The notes under the pieces were generated by a model. It worked only from the letters and a program-made list of their open reading frames with translations. It had not been told where the DNA came from and did no database searches. A DNA stretch of 64,000 nucleotides. Source: Zootoca vivipara (taxonomy: Eukaryota). Shown here one piece after another: positions 12,083-27,070 of this stretch (the stretch's first letter is position 1; each line of letters starts with the position of its first letter). Made by a program: the position numbers and the translations under genes. The stretch covers positions 38,502,001-38,566,000 of the forward strand of contig NC_083288.1 in assembly GCF_963506605.1 (NCBI RefSeq), given 5' to 3'.

Positions 12083-12211
12083 TCAGCAGCATTTCTTGAC
12101 GGAGGGTTTCTTTTTGGGCTTGTTGATTTTGACAACCTCATTCTGCTGTTGGAGCCGTGCCAGATTTTCCTGTTTAGTCCGGAGCACCATGGCTGTGATG
12201 GCATTGAACAT
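12083..12211 (-). CDS. RAB35-like last coding exon
   Basis: [42 protein letters not shown]. Confidence 0.95.
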   Translation of the reverse strand: MFNAITAMVLRTKQENLARLQQQNEVVKINKPKKKPSVKKCC

Positions 12212-15200
12212 CTGTAGCAGAGGAAAAATACAGAGTGATGAAACTGCCTTTTCCTACCAAGAACGTGTGTGCACGCATACACACAAACCCAAATTGGGCA
12301 CAGAGACCTTTCTCTAATAGGGAGTGGGGGACATTCTTCGCTCCACAGGCAAAATCCTTGTCAGGATCTGCCTCGCAGGATAAAATGGATGGGTGGCTGA
12401 GAGAGCACCTACCTGTCAATCACATTATTGTGTCTCGTGACTGACATACAGCAGGGGCTCCCACACGCTTAAGGTCGGAACAAGCTCTGGAGCTGAAAGG
12501 GGAGCAAAGACTTTTTGCAAACCTCCCTCTTCTCTTTCAAGTCCCCAAGATCAGGAACTTTAAAAGGAAGAGGCTTGCAAAAGCCTTTCCAAATCTCTGC
12601 CCACCCCACCTCTCATTTAAGGTTCCGATATTTAATTCACTGAGGACTGAAAATTAAATCCTGTTGACTAGGCTACACAGTCCTGTTCACAACCAATGCA
12701 GGATTAAACACTATCCTCCCATCAGTTGACCTCACCGATGGGCAAGGGGGCATGGTTTGGGGGGCCAAATTGGTTCCCCCATCCCTGCTCTTGTGTGTTT
12801 CCATTCTTCCCGTCTCCACCCTCACACACCCCGGTCCAATACCTCTTCCACATTGAGGTTTTCCTTGGCGCTGGTTTCAAAGAGACGGACTCCCATTTGC
12901 TCACTGAACCGCCGGGCGTCGGCTGTCTCCACTTGCTTCCGCGATGGGTCCTCGCATTTGTTACCCACTGATGACAATTTGGGGAAGAGGAAGGAGGAGG
13001 AATCAGAAGCGGAATCAAACGCAACAAAAGGATCCAACAGTCTTAATTATTACCGGAGGAAATAATGTAATACCGGTAGTACCAGCGGTATAGACACAAA
13101 GAGCACGGCTAATTCCCAAACCAGAGTATTCAAAGAAAAATTGCCCCATAAGCTACCAAGCCGAGGCAGTACAACCGCTCAACAGAAACAAGATTGTCAG
13201 GTTAGATCAGAGAGCCATTTATTGCACCAATTTAAGTTGTTAGGAACAACTTTCCCTAGAAAAGCTTTAAAACCGCCTGTGACCTTAGCTCAGTTGTACA
13301 GCACATGCTTCCCACGTGGAAAGTCCCAGGTCAAGCCTTAAGTTGTTTGTTTGTTTTTCAGGATCAGGAAGGAGGTGATGAGGGGGAAATTCTCTGCCCA
13401 AGACCCTGCTATCCATTAAGTGCACATGGTCTGAACCCCACTCCAAGCAACTGCACATAGGATGCGGTGCTTTCCCTCTCCCTGCATGAAAGAACACAGT
13501 GTACCACCAGCCAGGTGACTTAGGGATGCTTGAAGGCTATACCCCCCCCCTGCTGCCTCCCAGAAAGAGCATCATACCAGGTTGGGGGGGGGAGGAGAGA
13601 CCATCCTTTGGCTGCGCCAGCATTTGCTTTCATCTCCATTCCTTTCTCTTTTGTATCATGTCTATTTGCTTGTGAGCCTGCGGGCGGAGCATCTTGCCTC
13701 TTAATATATGCGCAGCGCTTAGAAAATGTTGGGCAATCACCTCCACAGCCTATCCCATCCACAAATGAAGCCACCGCAGTCCAGAATGAACTTCCCACCG
13801 ATGGCTCAGAAGTGCATATTTGCTCCTAGATTAACCAAAATGCACTGAGATTCTGACTGTGATTCTAGCCTAAACTTCAGGGCATGTGAGGACACCTACC
13901 CGTATATACTCCAGTATAAGCCGACACAAATATAAGCCGAGGCACCTAATTTTATCACAAAAAACTGGGAAGACTTATTGACTCGAGTATAAGCCGGTTC
14001 ACCACACCACAAACCCGCGGAGGAGGAAGGAGGGCTGCTTTCAGGCTGCTCGTTCCCCCTCCTCTGCATTTGCCGCTGTCGGAAATGCGCTCAGGTGGGA
14101 CCCTCACTCAAGTATAAGCTGAGGAGGGCTTTTTCAGCATAAAAAATGTGCTGAAAAAGTCAGCTTATACACGAGTATATACGGTACTTAGGTTTCCTGT
14201 TCCCCAAACCCACTGGTACATCCAAAAGTTAAAATGCAGGTCATAATTATCTGGGGGTATTAATGCATACACCTGACCTGGCACTGCACCTTGGGAAAAT
14301 CTTTTGGCCTTCAGCTTAGATAACTAGGTTTCAGTGTACTGTGAACACATATCCATTAAACCAGGCATCCCCAAACTTCGGCCCTCCAGATGTTTTGGAC
14401 TACAATTCCCATCTTCCCTGACCACTGGTCCTGCTAGCTAGGGATCATGGGAGTTGTAGGCCAAAACATCTGGAGGGCCGCAGTTTGGGGATGCCTGCAA
14501 TAAACGCTAGAAGACTGAATGTGGGGAGCTAGGATTTCAGCTCTGATTCACTCACCCAAGATCTTGCAGACGCTGTCACAGTTCTGCCCAATCTCATGCA
14601 GCCAACGCTTGACATTAACAAAGGACTCCGCGTTCGTCACATCATAGACGATGATGACACCATGCGTGTTACGGTAATACCTGTCACAGGAGAAAGAGAG
14701 ACCATAAAATGTGTTCCCTGTCCTAGAATAAACCTCTGCACCTCTCCCAGGAAACATGAAAAAAGAGTTATTTGCTCTGAAACCAGAAATCCCAATCCTT
14801 CCACATCTTTTCATTGTGGATGTATATCCCACCTGTTAACTAAGTTTCAGAGCGGCTTGCTCCCCACATACGTGCATCGGAGCCAATCCACATCACTCAA
14901 AAAGAATTCAAAATAACCTCCACTCTCCATCCTGCCCCTGGAATACCCCACATCTGTGCCCTGCTTACGTGGAAGTGATGGTTCGGAACCGTTCCTGTCC
15001 AGCAGTGTCCCAGATCTGCAGTTTCACTCGCTCTCCATTTATCACAAGCGTCCGAATTTTGAAATCTACCCCAATGGTTGTGATATAGCTGCCTGGGAGA
15101 GACATGTGGAAGGGAAAAGTTAGAGCAGGAGGTCAGAGGACAGGAGGAGAAAAATACTGGCAGGGAGATTTAACAAAACTTAAAAAATTCCAGTCGGAAA

Positions 15201-24925: not shown

Positions 24926-26099
24926 TCATGTGCTGGGTCAGCTCCTCCTCCTGTGTCTTTCACGTTCCCTGCAGGGATTCTCCACTTACTCCCACACTTT
25001 CCAGTGGGAAATTTATTCTGCCTCAATGACCCATTGCAGTTAATCAGGACACAGTGTTGAGCATGCCAGTCTCTTCCCCCCACTGCCTCCCGTGTCCAGA
25101 AGATCCTGAAAAACTTCCAAATGCAAGATCAGGTCGATTTGACAACGCAGTTGTTTCCTCGGAAATGGGAAAGTTTAAGGCTGTCTTTCTGCCAAAAGTC
25201 CCTCCAGGTTTGTTTTTTTGGAGCGCAGATGTTACAAGCTTCTCTTTCCAGATCTTTGCTTCCTTAAAGTCAAATGACAAAAAGGAACCCGCTTGAGCCT
25301 GCCAAGAGAGTTTCTTCCTATGTCAACAATCTGTAGAATGCAGTGTCGAAAGCGTATCCGCCGTTTTTTTGGATTTTTAAAAGAGAGGGCAGTCCACAGA
25401 TGTAGCACAGGCCCACAGTTTAGTAAGACCTCAGGCTTCCTCTGATGGGATGGGGCAGAGCAAAAAGATTAGGAAGGTGAAAAAAGCATCAGGAAATGAC
25501 AGAATATATATATTTTTCCAAAGGAGCTGTTTTTCCCACATTCAGCAGCGGGGTGCCAAAGGGTGTTGCAGTTTACGAAAAGCTTGACATTGGGGTCTCC
25601 AAAGGAAATAAGTAATTCAGAGCTTTAAAAAAAAATACAGGACAGAAGATTTATTCAAAAAGGTGGCTTTTAAAATAATAATAAAAAAGGAAACCCAGAA
25701 GGGAAAACACAAATCCTCAGACCAAAATTTGTGGTTCTGCCAAAAAAAGAAAAAAGGAATGAACTGATTAAGGACCACAGAAATTATTTAAAAATATATA
25801 TAACCAGAAAAGAAGGGGAATTTAGGTCCTTCCAAAAGCCTTCCTGTTTCCCAGAATAAATGGTAAAGCACAGGGGTGACAACCAGACACTTTCAATTGG
25901 GGTGGGGAAGAAGAGAGAGGAGATTAGAGAAATAAGAGGGGGGAGGAGAGAACGAGGGTCAAATAAAGCAGGGAGTTTCGCCCCCACCCAAGGGATCGAA
26001 GCCAATAGGAAGGACCTTAAAGTTTCTCTCCAAATGACCTGGCAGCCTTTTCTTTTCCTAACATTCGCTGGGGCGGGGTAGAGAGAGAGAGAAGGAGAG

Positions 26100-27070
26100 C
26101 CACGAAAACAGGCAAGAAAGGGAAGCAGGGAAGCAGAGAGAGGGAGAGATGCGCCGGGTCTGGAAGCACGAGGAAACCCCGGATCTCGGGAATCAATGAA
26201 GGATCGGGGGAAGGGGAGGCTCAGGCTGGGGAAGGGGCGCAGGGCGCATCTGCAAGGGGAGGGAGGCTCTCGCGGGGCCCCCCCAGGCCAGACGGGTCTC
26301 GTTGCTGTGCGGCTGCCGCCCTCCGTCCCTCTCCCGGCCGGACGCTGGGCTGGGATCAGATGACCGCGGAGCTCGCAGGCTGCCGCTTCCTTCCTGCCTC
26401 TCCCCTCCTGCTGCTGCTGCTGCCGCCGCTTCCTCCGCCTCCTTCCCAAGCGCAGCAGGCGCCGCCTCTCGCGCCCGCTCGGGCCGATGGAACGCCAGGG
26501 CGCGATTGGAATCAGCCGGGAGGGGGCGGGTCCGGGGGCGGGGTCCGGCTTATAATGGGCGGTGCCTGGCGGGCGGGGCTTCCAAGTGGGGAGAGGCGGC
26601 AATAAAGAATGGGCGGGGCTTAAGGGCGACAGGGCGGGCTGGGGATCGGAGCTCCATCGAAGCCAATTTAAGCAACCTATATTATTATCATCATTATCAT
26701 TATTATATTAGAATTTAACTCAGTCCTCGGGGTTATGGAAATTTATAGACGTAAAGCAAAAATATAAATATTCGTGGGTGGGTCAGTGCAGCAGCCCGAG
26801 AGCCTTCAGCAGGTTTACTCGGGAGTAAGCCGGGCATACTTTAATTAGGGGCCCGTTTCTGCGGAGGCGAGTGCCCCAACAGGATTACAGCCCGAAAATA
26901 GTCCGTGAAGGCTGCAGCCCGGTGCACTCGGGGAAGCAAATCCCGCGGAATGCATATTTATTTCTGAGCAATCGCCAATCGGGCATAGGATCGGCTTGCC
27001 AGGGAATGAGCACGTTCAACTCCGCACGCCGCCCCCCCCCCCCCCGCGGCCGGGAAATATACAGTAGACC
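26100..27070 (-). promoter_or_regulatory. CpG island / promoter of the RAB35-like gene
   Basis: Dense CpG; several GGGCGG boxes at 26520-26640; CCAAT (-) near 26506; (GCA/GCG)n tract typical of a 5'UTR at 26408-26430; candidate 5'UTR acceptor ttttttggcag near 25737. Confidence 0.8.

Follow-up and report, generated by a model that had tools for sequence, protein, structure and literature searches.

A second, old Rab35 paralogue beside a BICD-family-like adaptor gene in Zootoca vivipara

Introduction

Rab35 has been studied intensively for its part in regulating endocytic recycling, cytokinesis, cilia and neurite growth. A human-centred Rab catalogue treats it as single-copy in vertebrates (PMC3425129). 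The 64,000 nucleotides of Zootoca vivipara DNA analysed here (the window) hold a Rab35-type gene between HCFC1R1 and a BICD-family-like adaptor gene, and the question raised by this locus is whether that gene is the canonical RAB35, a recent copy of it or a second gene of greater age. An earlier note on this DNA had proposed a second Rab35 that squamates kept and mammals lost, duplicated together with its adaptor neighbour in the genome duplications of early vertebrates. The second paralogue line is given the working name RAB35L here.

Gene structure and protein identity

RAB35L lies on the minus strand, with six coding exons in positions 12083-24925 that total 609 nt (202 codons and the stop):

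24871-24925, minus strand: coding exon 1; GT donor; N-terminus and first base of the Gly19 codon; 18/18 residues equal to P0199
16392-16442, minus strand: coding exon 2; P-loop; AG/GT; 16/16 residues equal to P0199; RNA junction 15092/16392
14969-15092, minus strand: coding exon 3; switch I, interswitch, DTAGQE and start of switch II; 40/40 residues equal to P0199; RNA junctions on both sides
14556-14680, minus strand: coding exon 4; YYRNTHG...NCDSVCKIL, with the clade-specific Asn81; 41/41 residues equal to P0199; RNA junctions
12843-12967, minus strand: coding exon 5; G4 motif NKCE and G5 motif SAK; 41/41 residues equal to P0199; RNA junctions
12083-12211, minus strand: coding exon 6; end of helix 5, polybasic tail, CC prenylation site and stop; 42/42 residues equal to P0199; RNA junction 12211/12843

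Canonical AG/GT splice sites were found at every internal exon boundary, and exon 1 carries a 5' UTR that runs upstream. The translations of all six exons match the RefSeq "ras-related protein Rab-35-like" of lacertid lizards (P0199, the protein of Lacerta agilis and Podarcis muralis), with 198/198 in-frame exon residues equal; the gene is thus already annotated. P0199 stood in for the joined exon model in protein comparisons.

The protein contains a Ras-type GTPase domain (Pfam PF00071, E 1.2e-59, residues 11-169) with the nucleotide motifs G1 (GDSGVGKS), G2 (TIGVDF), G3 (DTAGQE) and G5 (TSAK). The G4 motif reads NKCE instead of NKxD, a conservative Asp to Glu change; NKxE is also common to the sharks, rays, chimaera, sturgeon, axolotl and turtles of the RAB35L clade (sequences checked). 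The switch II stretch is FRTITSTYYRNTH, and the C-terminus has a polybasic stretch followed by the prenylation cysteines CC and the stop codon, as in the Rab35 subfamily.

Identity to mammalian RAB35 was 161/202 residues (80%), and about 83% to the human RAB35 crystal construct 3TW8 over residues 3-181 (hand count of alignment mismatches). By region, it was 94% in residues 1-80, 78% in residues 81-160 and 57% in helix 5 and the tail. When the Protein Data Bank was searched, RAB35 chains scored 334 bits and the second-best family, Rab1 (Rab1A/Rab1B), 223 bits; exon 5 alone gave 51 bits to RAB35 and 25 bits to Rab1A. The best hits of a database search with P0199 were all animal Rab35 proteins. 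By these sequence comparisons, the gene in the window belongs to the Rab35 subfamily of Rab GTPases. The earlier description of a complete, six-exon, 202-residue RAB35-type gene, some 80% identical to human RAB35 and with its switch II residues and polybasic-CC tail in place, was therefore accurate: the frame is open, the boundaries are AG/GT and the gene is expressed (see below).

Phylogeny and age of the duplication

A maximum-likelihood tree was built in which the RAB35L clade comprised 29 rows and amphioxus and other invertebrates were included. Before the final tree, the frame-shifted tails of 152-aa predicted isoforms were cut and mispredicted stretches masked; left untrimmed, those tails distorted the trees by grouping the isoforms together. 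Sharks, rays, chimaera, ray-finned fishes, coelacanth, lungfish, amphibians, turtles, alligator and squamates were united in the RAB35L clade with support of 100/98. Canonical RAB35 formed a separate clade with moderate support (83/84), and amphioxus and the other invertebrates fell outside both. The window protein grouped in the former clade and not with mammalian RAB35, so that the phylogeny called for by the earlier note places it in an old jawed-vertebrate line.

In every RAB35L sequence checked, residue 81 is Asn (YYRNTHG), and in every other Rab35 checked it is Gly; the exception is the 152-aa Nothobranchius isoform, which has a frame-shifted tail and in which no motif was read. Judged from the tree, the duplication took place after amphioxus had branched off and before cartilaginous and bony vertebrates parted. 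Since the canonical clade reached only 83/84 and the cyclostome sequences (lamprey, hagfish) were not settled relative to the two clades, the duplication can be assigned to neither the first nor the second round specifically.

The view that squamates kept a second Rab35 holds as to retention but not as a squamate peculiarity, sharks, ray-finned fishes, coelacanth, lungfish, amphibians and turtles having kept it too; on the proteins compared, jawed vertebrates other than mammals and birds generally keep the gene. No mammalian or bird RAB35L was found among the best NCBI and UniRef protein hits or in the clade. The absence claimed for mammals is borne out within those hits, birds seem to be without the gene as well, and the protein databases alone thus suggest a loss in the mammalian line and apparently also in birds.

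Genomic neighbourhood and origin

The following neighbours were recognised in the window:

33343-50252, minus strand: exons of a BICD-family-like cargo adaptor gene, upstream neighbour of RAB35L (open reading frames; exon 43981-44292 compared with mouse BICDR1)
9497-9811, plus strand: exon of HCFC1R1 (HPIP family), downstream neighbour, convergent with RAB35L (Pfam PF15226, E 1.7e-7, above the curated cut-off)
2866-3156, minus strand: THOC6 exon (WD repeat) within an open frame (human THOC6 chain 7APK_F residues 136-161, E 2.4e-8)

Adaptor exon 43981-44292 matches residues 145-227 of mouse BICDR1 (E 3e-12, about 50% identity), and one exon of the same gene contains an N run (33426-33555). A protein-family search with the BICDL exon returned generic coiled-coil families only, in which BICDL1 and BICDL2 are indistinguishable, and Pfam gave no match above its cut-offs for the BICDL and THOC6 exon frames. 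MMP25 was not found beyond the adaptor gene by a motif scan of the window. The adaptor gene is probably BICDL2, a naming taken only from its neighbours THOC6 and HCFC1R1. It stands in tandem with RAB35L, on one strand. Human BICDL1 and RAB35 are taken here to be convergent, so that an inversion must be assumed.

In human, the published gene order is HCFC1R1, THOC6, CCDC64B, MMP25, with no Rab gene in the list (PMC5345335), and the adaptor gene, HCFC1R1 and THOC6 that flank RAB35L bear out the proposed correspondence to human 16p13.3. Canonical RAB35 has another setting: CCDC64, RAB35 and GCN1L1 share one human locus, 12q24.23 (PMC7188784), and pxn, gcn1l1 and rab35 are kept together in tetrapods, gar and coelacanth (PMC5091871), whereas THOC6, HCFC1R1 and the BICD-family-like gene are found here instead of GCN1 and PXN. 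Of the duplicated Rab/adaptor pair that had been proposed, the adjacency stands, a BICD-family-like gene adjoining both RAB35L and human RAB35, but the neighbour here is BICDL2 by context only.

RAB35L most likely originated in the early vertebrate genome duplications, as suggested by the timing of the split together with one neighbouring paralogue pair. The tree yields timing only, however, and would also accommodate an old paralogue produced outside the two rounds, by segmental duplication of BICDL and Rab35 or by a retro- or DNA-level copy before jawed vertebrates radiated; a single neighbouring pair was seen, and the adaptor/Rab orientation in the window differs from the convergent one of human BICDL1 and RAB35. 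Against this, all five introns sit at the positions expected from the exon layout of the canonical protein, and RAB35L is therefore not a retrocopy. Further paralogue pairs presumably join 12q24 and 16p (PXN/TGFB1I1, MMP17/MMP25, ATP2A2/ATP2A1 and SH2B3/SH2B1), which argues against a purely segmental copy. BICDR-1 and BICDR-2, moreover, are both vertebrate genes, flies having BICDR-1 only (PMC2876961). An origin outside the genome duplications is accordingly considered unlikely. For the earlier idea of a genome-duplication paralogue lost in mammals, the date before the jawed-vertebrate radiation (clade 100/98) and the lack of a mammalian hit are favourable, but the attribution to the two rounds stays inferential.

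Expression and constraint

RNA data from three studies were used: raw runs X19 and X20 supplied junction reads, and X1 and X2 supplied spliced contigs. The features recognised outside the coding exons were:

10866-12082, minus strand: probable 3' UTR (reads in the same direction as exon reads; contig depth equal to exon depth in X1 and X2)
12413-12492, minus strand: 80-nt cassette exon, alternatively included between exons 5 and 6 and carrying a stop in frame (LQSLFRP*); junctions in run X19 only
26000-27250, strand not assigned: CpG island (GC 0.54-0.65, CpG observed/expected 0.69-1.05)

Four of the five coding junctions (12211/12843, 12967/14556, 14680/14969 and 15092/16392) were seen exactly as modelled, the exon 1-2 junction lying beyond the read-mapped stretch, and exons 3-6 were spanned by a single RNA contig of 1429 nt; the expression check suggested earlier was thus positive. 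Many RNA molecules end near 10866, and the 3' UTR is probably continuous with exon 6 across a contig break at 11978-12026. The CpG island, 1.1-2.3 kb upstream of the ATG exon, is a candidate promoter with a non-coding first exon of RAB35L; if it is so used, an extra non-coding exon is probable and the gene would have seven exons rather than six.

Two features could be read as decay in this lizard, to an expressed pseudogene or to a GTPase that no longer binds nucleotide: NKCE stands in place of NKxD, and in run X19 the reads across the stop-containing cassette junctions (12211/12413, n=8; 12492/12843, n=5) outnumber those across the normal exon 5-6 junction (n=3). The assembled contig in X1 and X2, however, is the normally spliced form, the frame is open over 202 codons, and NKxE is found in all cartilaginous fishes checked, sturgeon, axolotl and turtles, in proteins otherwise highly conserved. 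The lizard protein differs from that of the amphisbaenian Rhineura or of Anolis at a single residue (197/198 identical), and BLASTP identity to P0199 was 90% in the coelacanth, 84-88% in sharks and rays and 79% in the chimaera. The 26-residue tail is common to lizard and rays and almost unchanged from rays to lizards. Decay is therefore very improbable; judged from these identities, strong purifying selection has preserved RAB35L in most jawed vertebrates.

Relation to the canonical gene and database names

That the lizard has a single Rab35 gene, the canonical one, relocated to this site, is suggested by databases that name some members of the clade plain "Rab-35" (Tiliqua, Xenopus, many teleosts). 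Separate canonical proteins are nevertheless present in Lacerta agilis (P0072), Paroedura (P0073), Crotalus adamanteus (P0293) and Pelodiscus (P0058), and both genes occur in Scyliorhinus, Callorhinchus, Latimeria, Megalops, Paramormyrops, Crotalus, Paroedura and Lacerta. The window protein is 80% identical to mammalian RAB35, whereas canonical sauropsid proteins are nearly identical to it, the canonical lizard isoforms equalling mouse over the first 117 alignment columns. Relocation is extremely improbable, and for the lacertid family it is ruled out by the possession of both P0199 and P0072 in Lacerta agilis, in agreement with the earlier claim of a second Rab35 distinct from the canonical gene. 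A recent squamate- or reptile-specific duplicate, with which the NCBI name "Rab-35-like" is compatible and for which no support was found, is ruled out by the 100/98 clade with sharks, ray-finned fishes, coelacanth and amphibians, by the AU test (forced union of squamate RAB35L and squamate RAB35 costs 131.7 log-likelihood units, p 2.75e-69) and by the Asn81 common to all jawed-vertebrate RAB35L sequences checked, and has virtually no probability left.

The line is already in databases: RefSeq lists it as "Rab-35-like", and fish records as si:dkey-16l2.16. Xenopus NP_989002.1, which bears the name "Rab-35", belongs to the same type, and these fish and frog proteins carry Asn81 and fall within the RAB35L clade. 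Names are used both ways: RAB35L members go by either Rab-35 or Rab-35-like depending on the species, while certain fishes and frogs have the canonical gene entered as Rab-35b or Rab-35-like. Teleosts have rab35a and rab35b as well as the si:dkey-16l2.16 type. Searches with the fish gene name and the Rab35-like names returned no paper treating this paralogue beyond brief mentions in expression lists.

Proposed function and significance

RAB35L, the old second line of the Rab35 subfamily, is predicted to work as a small GTPase. It would cycle between GTP and GDP forms and be geranylgeranylated at the C-terminal CC, and its polybasic tail would take it, as in Rab35, to the acidic lipids of the plasma membrane and recycling endosomes. 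Because the first 80 residues (P-loop, switch I, interswitch and switch II) are so close to those of RAB35, RAB35L probably shares with it the DENND1-type exchange factors and many effectors. Divergence in residues 81-160 and in the tail, with the tail itself near-constant from rays to lizards, points to a possibly distinct targeting or choice of partners.

A more far-reaching proposal, put forward tentatively and with the odds against it, is that RAB35L is a jawed-vertebrate member of a Rab subfamily, as yet unnamed, whose function is distinct (fixed Gly81Asn beside switch II, repeated tolerance of Glu in G4, tail conserved from rays to lizards), lost independently in mammals and birds after a relaxation in archosaurs, and either mixed up with rab35 or buffering it in Xenopus and zebrafish work. 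In its boldest form, there may be a functional tie between RAB35L and the adjoining dynein adaptor gene.

The structure, splicing and expression of the gene, its position in the tree and its neighbours are shown by the data, whereas its biochemical behaviour, its whole-genome-duplication origin and a true loss in mammals and birds are inferred. The ancestral jawed vertebrate had two Rab35 switches, and mammals and birds seem to manage with one. Inconsistent database names hide the second gene, and knock-down or localisation studies in frogs and fishes need to specify which Rab35 was addressed. An old duplicate lost in mammals is a common case, and the surprise to the specialist is moderate.

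Comparison with known Rab proteins

Canonical RAB35 (human 12q24.23; structures 3TW8, 6EKK and 6IF2) and RAB35L are of like length class and have the same six coding exons; both have a polybasic tail ending in CC, and both have a BICD-family-like adaptor neighbour. They differ beside switch II, where RAB35L has Asn81 and canonical RAB35 has Gly, in the NKCE of G4, and in helix 5 and the tail, where a 15-residue stretch of RAB35L stands in place of the KLTKNSKRKKRCC of canonical RAB35. THOC6 and HCFC1R1 adjoin the one, GCN1 and PXN the other, and the two have formed separate clades since before sharks and bony vertebrates split. Rab1A/Rab1B, the next nearest subfamily, share the Rab fold and motifs with RAB35L at a far lower score. 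The RefSeq Rab-35-like proteins of reptiles, amphibians and fishes belong to the RAB35L line itself and do not differ from it in kind.

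Gene model and annotated protein

The minus-strand gene in the window belongs to a second, old line of Rab35 paralogues, here named RAB35L. It had been described in the earlier note as a complete RAB35-type gene of six exons and 202 aa, which was borne out: the six coding exons total 609 nt (202 codons and the stop), and AG and GT were found at every internal exon boundary. Four codons are split by introns (Gly19, Gly36, Thr77 and Val119).

Coding exons of RAB35L, in window positions
24871-24925, minus strand, coding exon 1 (internal boundary with GT)
16392-16442, minus strand, coding exon 2 (AG/GT boundaries)
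14969-15092, minus strand, coding exon 3 (AG/GT boundaries)
14556-14680, minus strand, coding exon 4 (AG/GT boundaries)
12843-12967, minus strand, coding exon 5 (AG/GT boundaries)
12083-12211, minus strand, coding exon 6 (internal boundary with AG)

Database searches were run exon by exon; with exon 5 as the sole query, human RAB35 scored 51 bits and the next family, Rab3, 29.5 bits. The frame of exon 4 led through annotated proteins and a cluster look-up to P0199 (202 aa), the RefSeq "ras-related protein Rab-35-like" of Lacerta agilis and Podarcis muralis, which was used for whole-protein comparisons. The six in-frame exon translations equal P0199 without a difference (198/198 residues) and the four intron-split codons likewise agree; this places the window in a lacertid lizard and makes the gene one already annotated. 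Its translation contains the P-loop GDSGVGKS, switch I (TIGVDF) followed by DTAGQE, and TSAK, and both the switch II residues and the polybasic C-terminal tail claimed for it were present (15 residues each, sequences not shown).

The estimate of about 80% identity to human RAB35 also held, as P0199 is identical to a mammalian RAB35 at 161 of 202 residues (80%) and to the crystal construct 3TW8 at ~83% (mismatches counted on the alignment). By region, identity to the mammalian protein fell from 94% in residues 1-80 to 78% in 81-160 and 57% in 161-202.

Identity of database proteins to P0199
Squamates: 97-99%
Softshell turtle Pelodiscus, partial: 94%
Coelacanth, axolotl, caecilian, lungfish: 89-91%
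Sharks, rays: 84-88%
Frogs, bichir, sturgeon, bowfin, chimaera: 79-83%
Canonical RAB35 (fishes 77-82%, mammals ~76%) and invertebrate Rab35: 73-82%

Phylogeny and age of RAB35L

The final maximum-likelihood tree comprised 65 rows and 201 columns, after frame-shifted isoform tails had been cut and mispredicted stretches masked. RAB35L proteins formed a clade of 29 rows (ultrafast bootstrap 100, SH-aLRT 98) that includes rays, sharks, chimaera, bichir, sturgeon, bowfin, teleosts (208-209 aa forms), coelacanth and lungfish among fishes, and salamander, caecilian, frogs, turtles, alligator and squamates, P0199 included, among tetrapods. Canonical RAB35 of shark, chimaera, coelacanth, frog, turtle, bird, snake, lizards, mammals and fishes formed another clade (support 83/84), and eight species or genera contribute a protein to both, for example Lacerta agilis (P0199 and its canonical RAB35, P0072). 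Amphioxus, echinoderms, hemichordates and protostomes fell outside both. The tree thus dates the split after amphioxus and before the separation of sharks and bony vertebrates. Lampreys and hagfish were weakly placed with the RAB35L clade (80/83), yet lack its marker residue. Two distinct Rab35 proteins (P0256/P0262, P0231; 202 aa and 207 aa) occur in lampreys, with Gly81 in both.

Forcing squamate RAB35L and squamate RAB35 into one clade cost 131.7 log-likelihood units (AU p 2.75e-69). Together with the clade support (100/98), this rejects a recent duplicate inside the canonical clade, and the two Lacerta agilis proteins reject RAB35L as the only Rab35 of lacertids; the two outcomes that the earlier note had set against its own reading are therefore excluded for lacertids. 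Its proposal that squamates kept a second Rab35 that mammals lost stood in part. The second gene is there, and among the RAB35L-type matches to P0199 in the protein collections there was no mammal or bird; retention is not specific to squamates, since the clade extends to sharks, fishes, amphibians and turtles.

Canonical RAB35 predictions of 152 aa ("isoform X2", P0063-P0103), in which the exon 4 sequence is followed by a frame-shifted tail, distorted trees built with these tails in place. Such predictions exist for species ranging from chimaera and paddlefish to lizards and mouse, and reflect either exon 5 skipping that is conserved or a recurring habit of annotation.

Gene neighbourhood and origin

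Read along the plus strand, the gene order in the window is THOC6, HCFC1R1, RAB35L and a BICD-family-like adaptor gene, RAB35L occupying the space between the last of these and HCFC1R1.

Neighbouring genes, in window positions
Exon at ~2.9 kb, minus strand, THOC6 (matches human THOC6 residues 136-161)
9.5-9.8 kb, plus strand, HCFC1R1 (Pfam HPIP)
Exons from 50.2 down to ~33.3 kb, minus strand, BICD-family-like adaptor gene (one exon matches mouse BICDR1)

The adaptor exon is ~50% identical to mouse BICDR1 residues 145-227, and a protein-family search with an adaptor exon gave generic coiled-coil families that did not separate BICDL1 from BICDL2; the assignment of the gene to BICDL2 is inferred from its neighbours. 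A run of 130 N (33426-33555) lies within an adaptor coding exon, right after ...QELEAWQ.

Vertebrates have the pair BICDR-1 and BICDR-2, and flies a single relative (PMC2876961). In a published list of human genes, the order TNFRSF12A, HCFC1R1, THOC6, CCDC64B, MMP25 has no Rab gene among them (PMC5345335), in keeping with the earlier note, which had no Rab between HCFC1R1/THOC6 and BICDL2. Human CCDC64, RAB35 and GCN1L1 share a single locus at 12q24.23 (PMC7188784), and in tetrapods, gar and coelacanth rab35 adjoins gcn1l1 and pxn (PMC5091871).

The best reading, though short of proof, is that RAB35L arose in the early vertebrate genome duplications, because of the timing of the split, the introns retained in RAB35L and the paralogous adaptor gene beside each copy. 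An older segmental duplication is the less likely alternative; the adaptor genes are the one neighbouring paralogue pair observed. Two details depart from a simple block copy. Adaptor and Rab genes are in tandem in the window, in contrast to human BICDL1 and RAB35, which are convergent, and this speaks for a segmental origin. THOC6 (minus) and HCFC1R1 (plus) lie head to head within 1-10300, as in human, and relative to the adaptor gene this pair is inverted compared with the human order. Further paralogue pairs presumably shared by 12q24 and 16p are PXN/TGFB1I1, MMP17/MMP25, ATP2A2/ATP2A1 and SH2B3/SH2B1.

Transcripts and splicing

RNA was mapped on 10700-16600, using raw RNA-seq reads of the same species (runs X19 and X20) and contigs of two probable RNA runs (X1 and X2), from three studies in all. 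The expression check proposed in the earlier note was positive: the four coding junctions in this interval (12211/12843, 12967/14556, 14680/14969 and 15092/16392; each GT..AG, minus strand) agree exactly with the model, in reads and contigs. One X2 contig of 1429 nt holds exons 3, 4, 5 and 6 in one piece, plus 870 nt further 5'.

Other features of the RAB35L locus, in window positions
~26.0-27.25 kb, CpG island, 1.1-2.3 kb upstream of the ATG exon
12413-12492, minus strand, 80-nt cassette exon between exons 5 and 6 (canonical splice sites, X19 reads)

Given the distance of the CpG island from the ATG exon, a non-coding first exon is likely, with a candidate position at the island. At the other end, the direction of the reads and a contig depth equal to that of the exons point to a 3' UTR of ~1.2 kb ending near 10866, convergent with HCFC1R1. 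Over 10866-11980, depth was equal to that of the coding exons in the X1 and X2 contigs and 30-70x higher in the raw reads of X19 and X20; the contigs of both X1 and X2 break at 11978-12026, a polymorphic low-complexity stretch. The excess is most likely 3' bias plus loss of reads to variants; a separate short minus-strand transcript is less likely.

The junctions of the cassette exon had 8 and 5 reads in X19, against 3 for the normal exon 5-6 junction, and the exon was not found in X20, X1 or X2. An in-frame stop follows seven codons (LQSLFRP*), and inclusion would strip the protein of the end of helix 5 and the lipid anchor; this isoform may be a regulated non-productive form. Within the intron between exons 4 and 5, 14246-14640 showed enormous RNA depth with many loose ends, but is a dispersed short repeat and hence uninformative on RAB35L. 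Similar copies occur at ~19.2-19.4, 20.3-20.6 and 21.7-21.9 kb (open-frame list).

Naming

RAB35L records are found in RefSeq and Ensembl-derived sets under inconsistent names: "Rab-35" in Tiliqua, Xenopus (NP_989002.1) and many teleosts, and "Rab-35-like" or si:dkey-16l2.16 elsewhere; some fish and frog records give canonical RAB35 the name "Rab-35b" or "Rab-35-like". In a comprehensive survey of Rabs, Rab35 is taken to be unduplicated in vertebrates (PMC3425129), and no paper on the paralogue was found in the open literature. RAB35L thus adds genuinely, if modestly, to a known subfamily: it is a member without a name of its own and, as judged from protein collections, another old duplicate that mammals lack.

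Constraint and likely mode of action

Asn81 was present in every RAB35L sequence checked (YYRNTHG; YYRNAHG in alligator), and Gly81 in every canonical, cyclostome and invertebrate Rab35 examined. A 26-residue tail (sequence not shown) is nearly unchanged among rays, coelacanth and lizards, which is unusual, since this region varies freely in most Rabs. The lizard G4 motif is NKCE (12951-12962, exon 5); NKxE also occurs in other reptiles, all cartilaginous fishes checked, sturgeon and axolotl, and NKxD in coelacanth, lungfish, frogs, bichir, bowfin and teleosts, as against invariable Asp in the canonical sequences checked. Either Glu was ancestral to the clade and reverted, or Asp and Glu flipped repeatedly.

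Lizard and turtle RAB35L are 96% identical over the whole protein, with almost no differences within exons 1-4, whereas the alligator protein (P0177, Alligator mississippiensis; its one available isoform is mis-spliced beyond exon 4) shows 81% identity to turtle across the first 118 residues. This far greater divergence points to a relaxing of constraint in archosaurs that preceded loss in birds, and would fit the lack of any bird RAB35L among the protein matches.

Judged by its residues, RAB35L would act, as Rab35 does, as a prenylated GTP/GDP switch at the plasma membrane and recycling endosomes. Rab35 meets exchange factors and effectors via switch I, interswitch and switch II, and these are identical in RAB35L save for positions 52, 53 and 57 in the hairpin; Asn81, which differs, sits just after switch II. 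The differences from Rab35 are found from helix 3 to helix 4, in helix 5 and in the tail, parts that in Rabs adjust the choice of partners and the targeting to membranes. The strong conservation of these regions within the RAB35L line speaks for a function of its own that has been retained, rather than simple redundancy.
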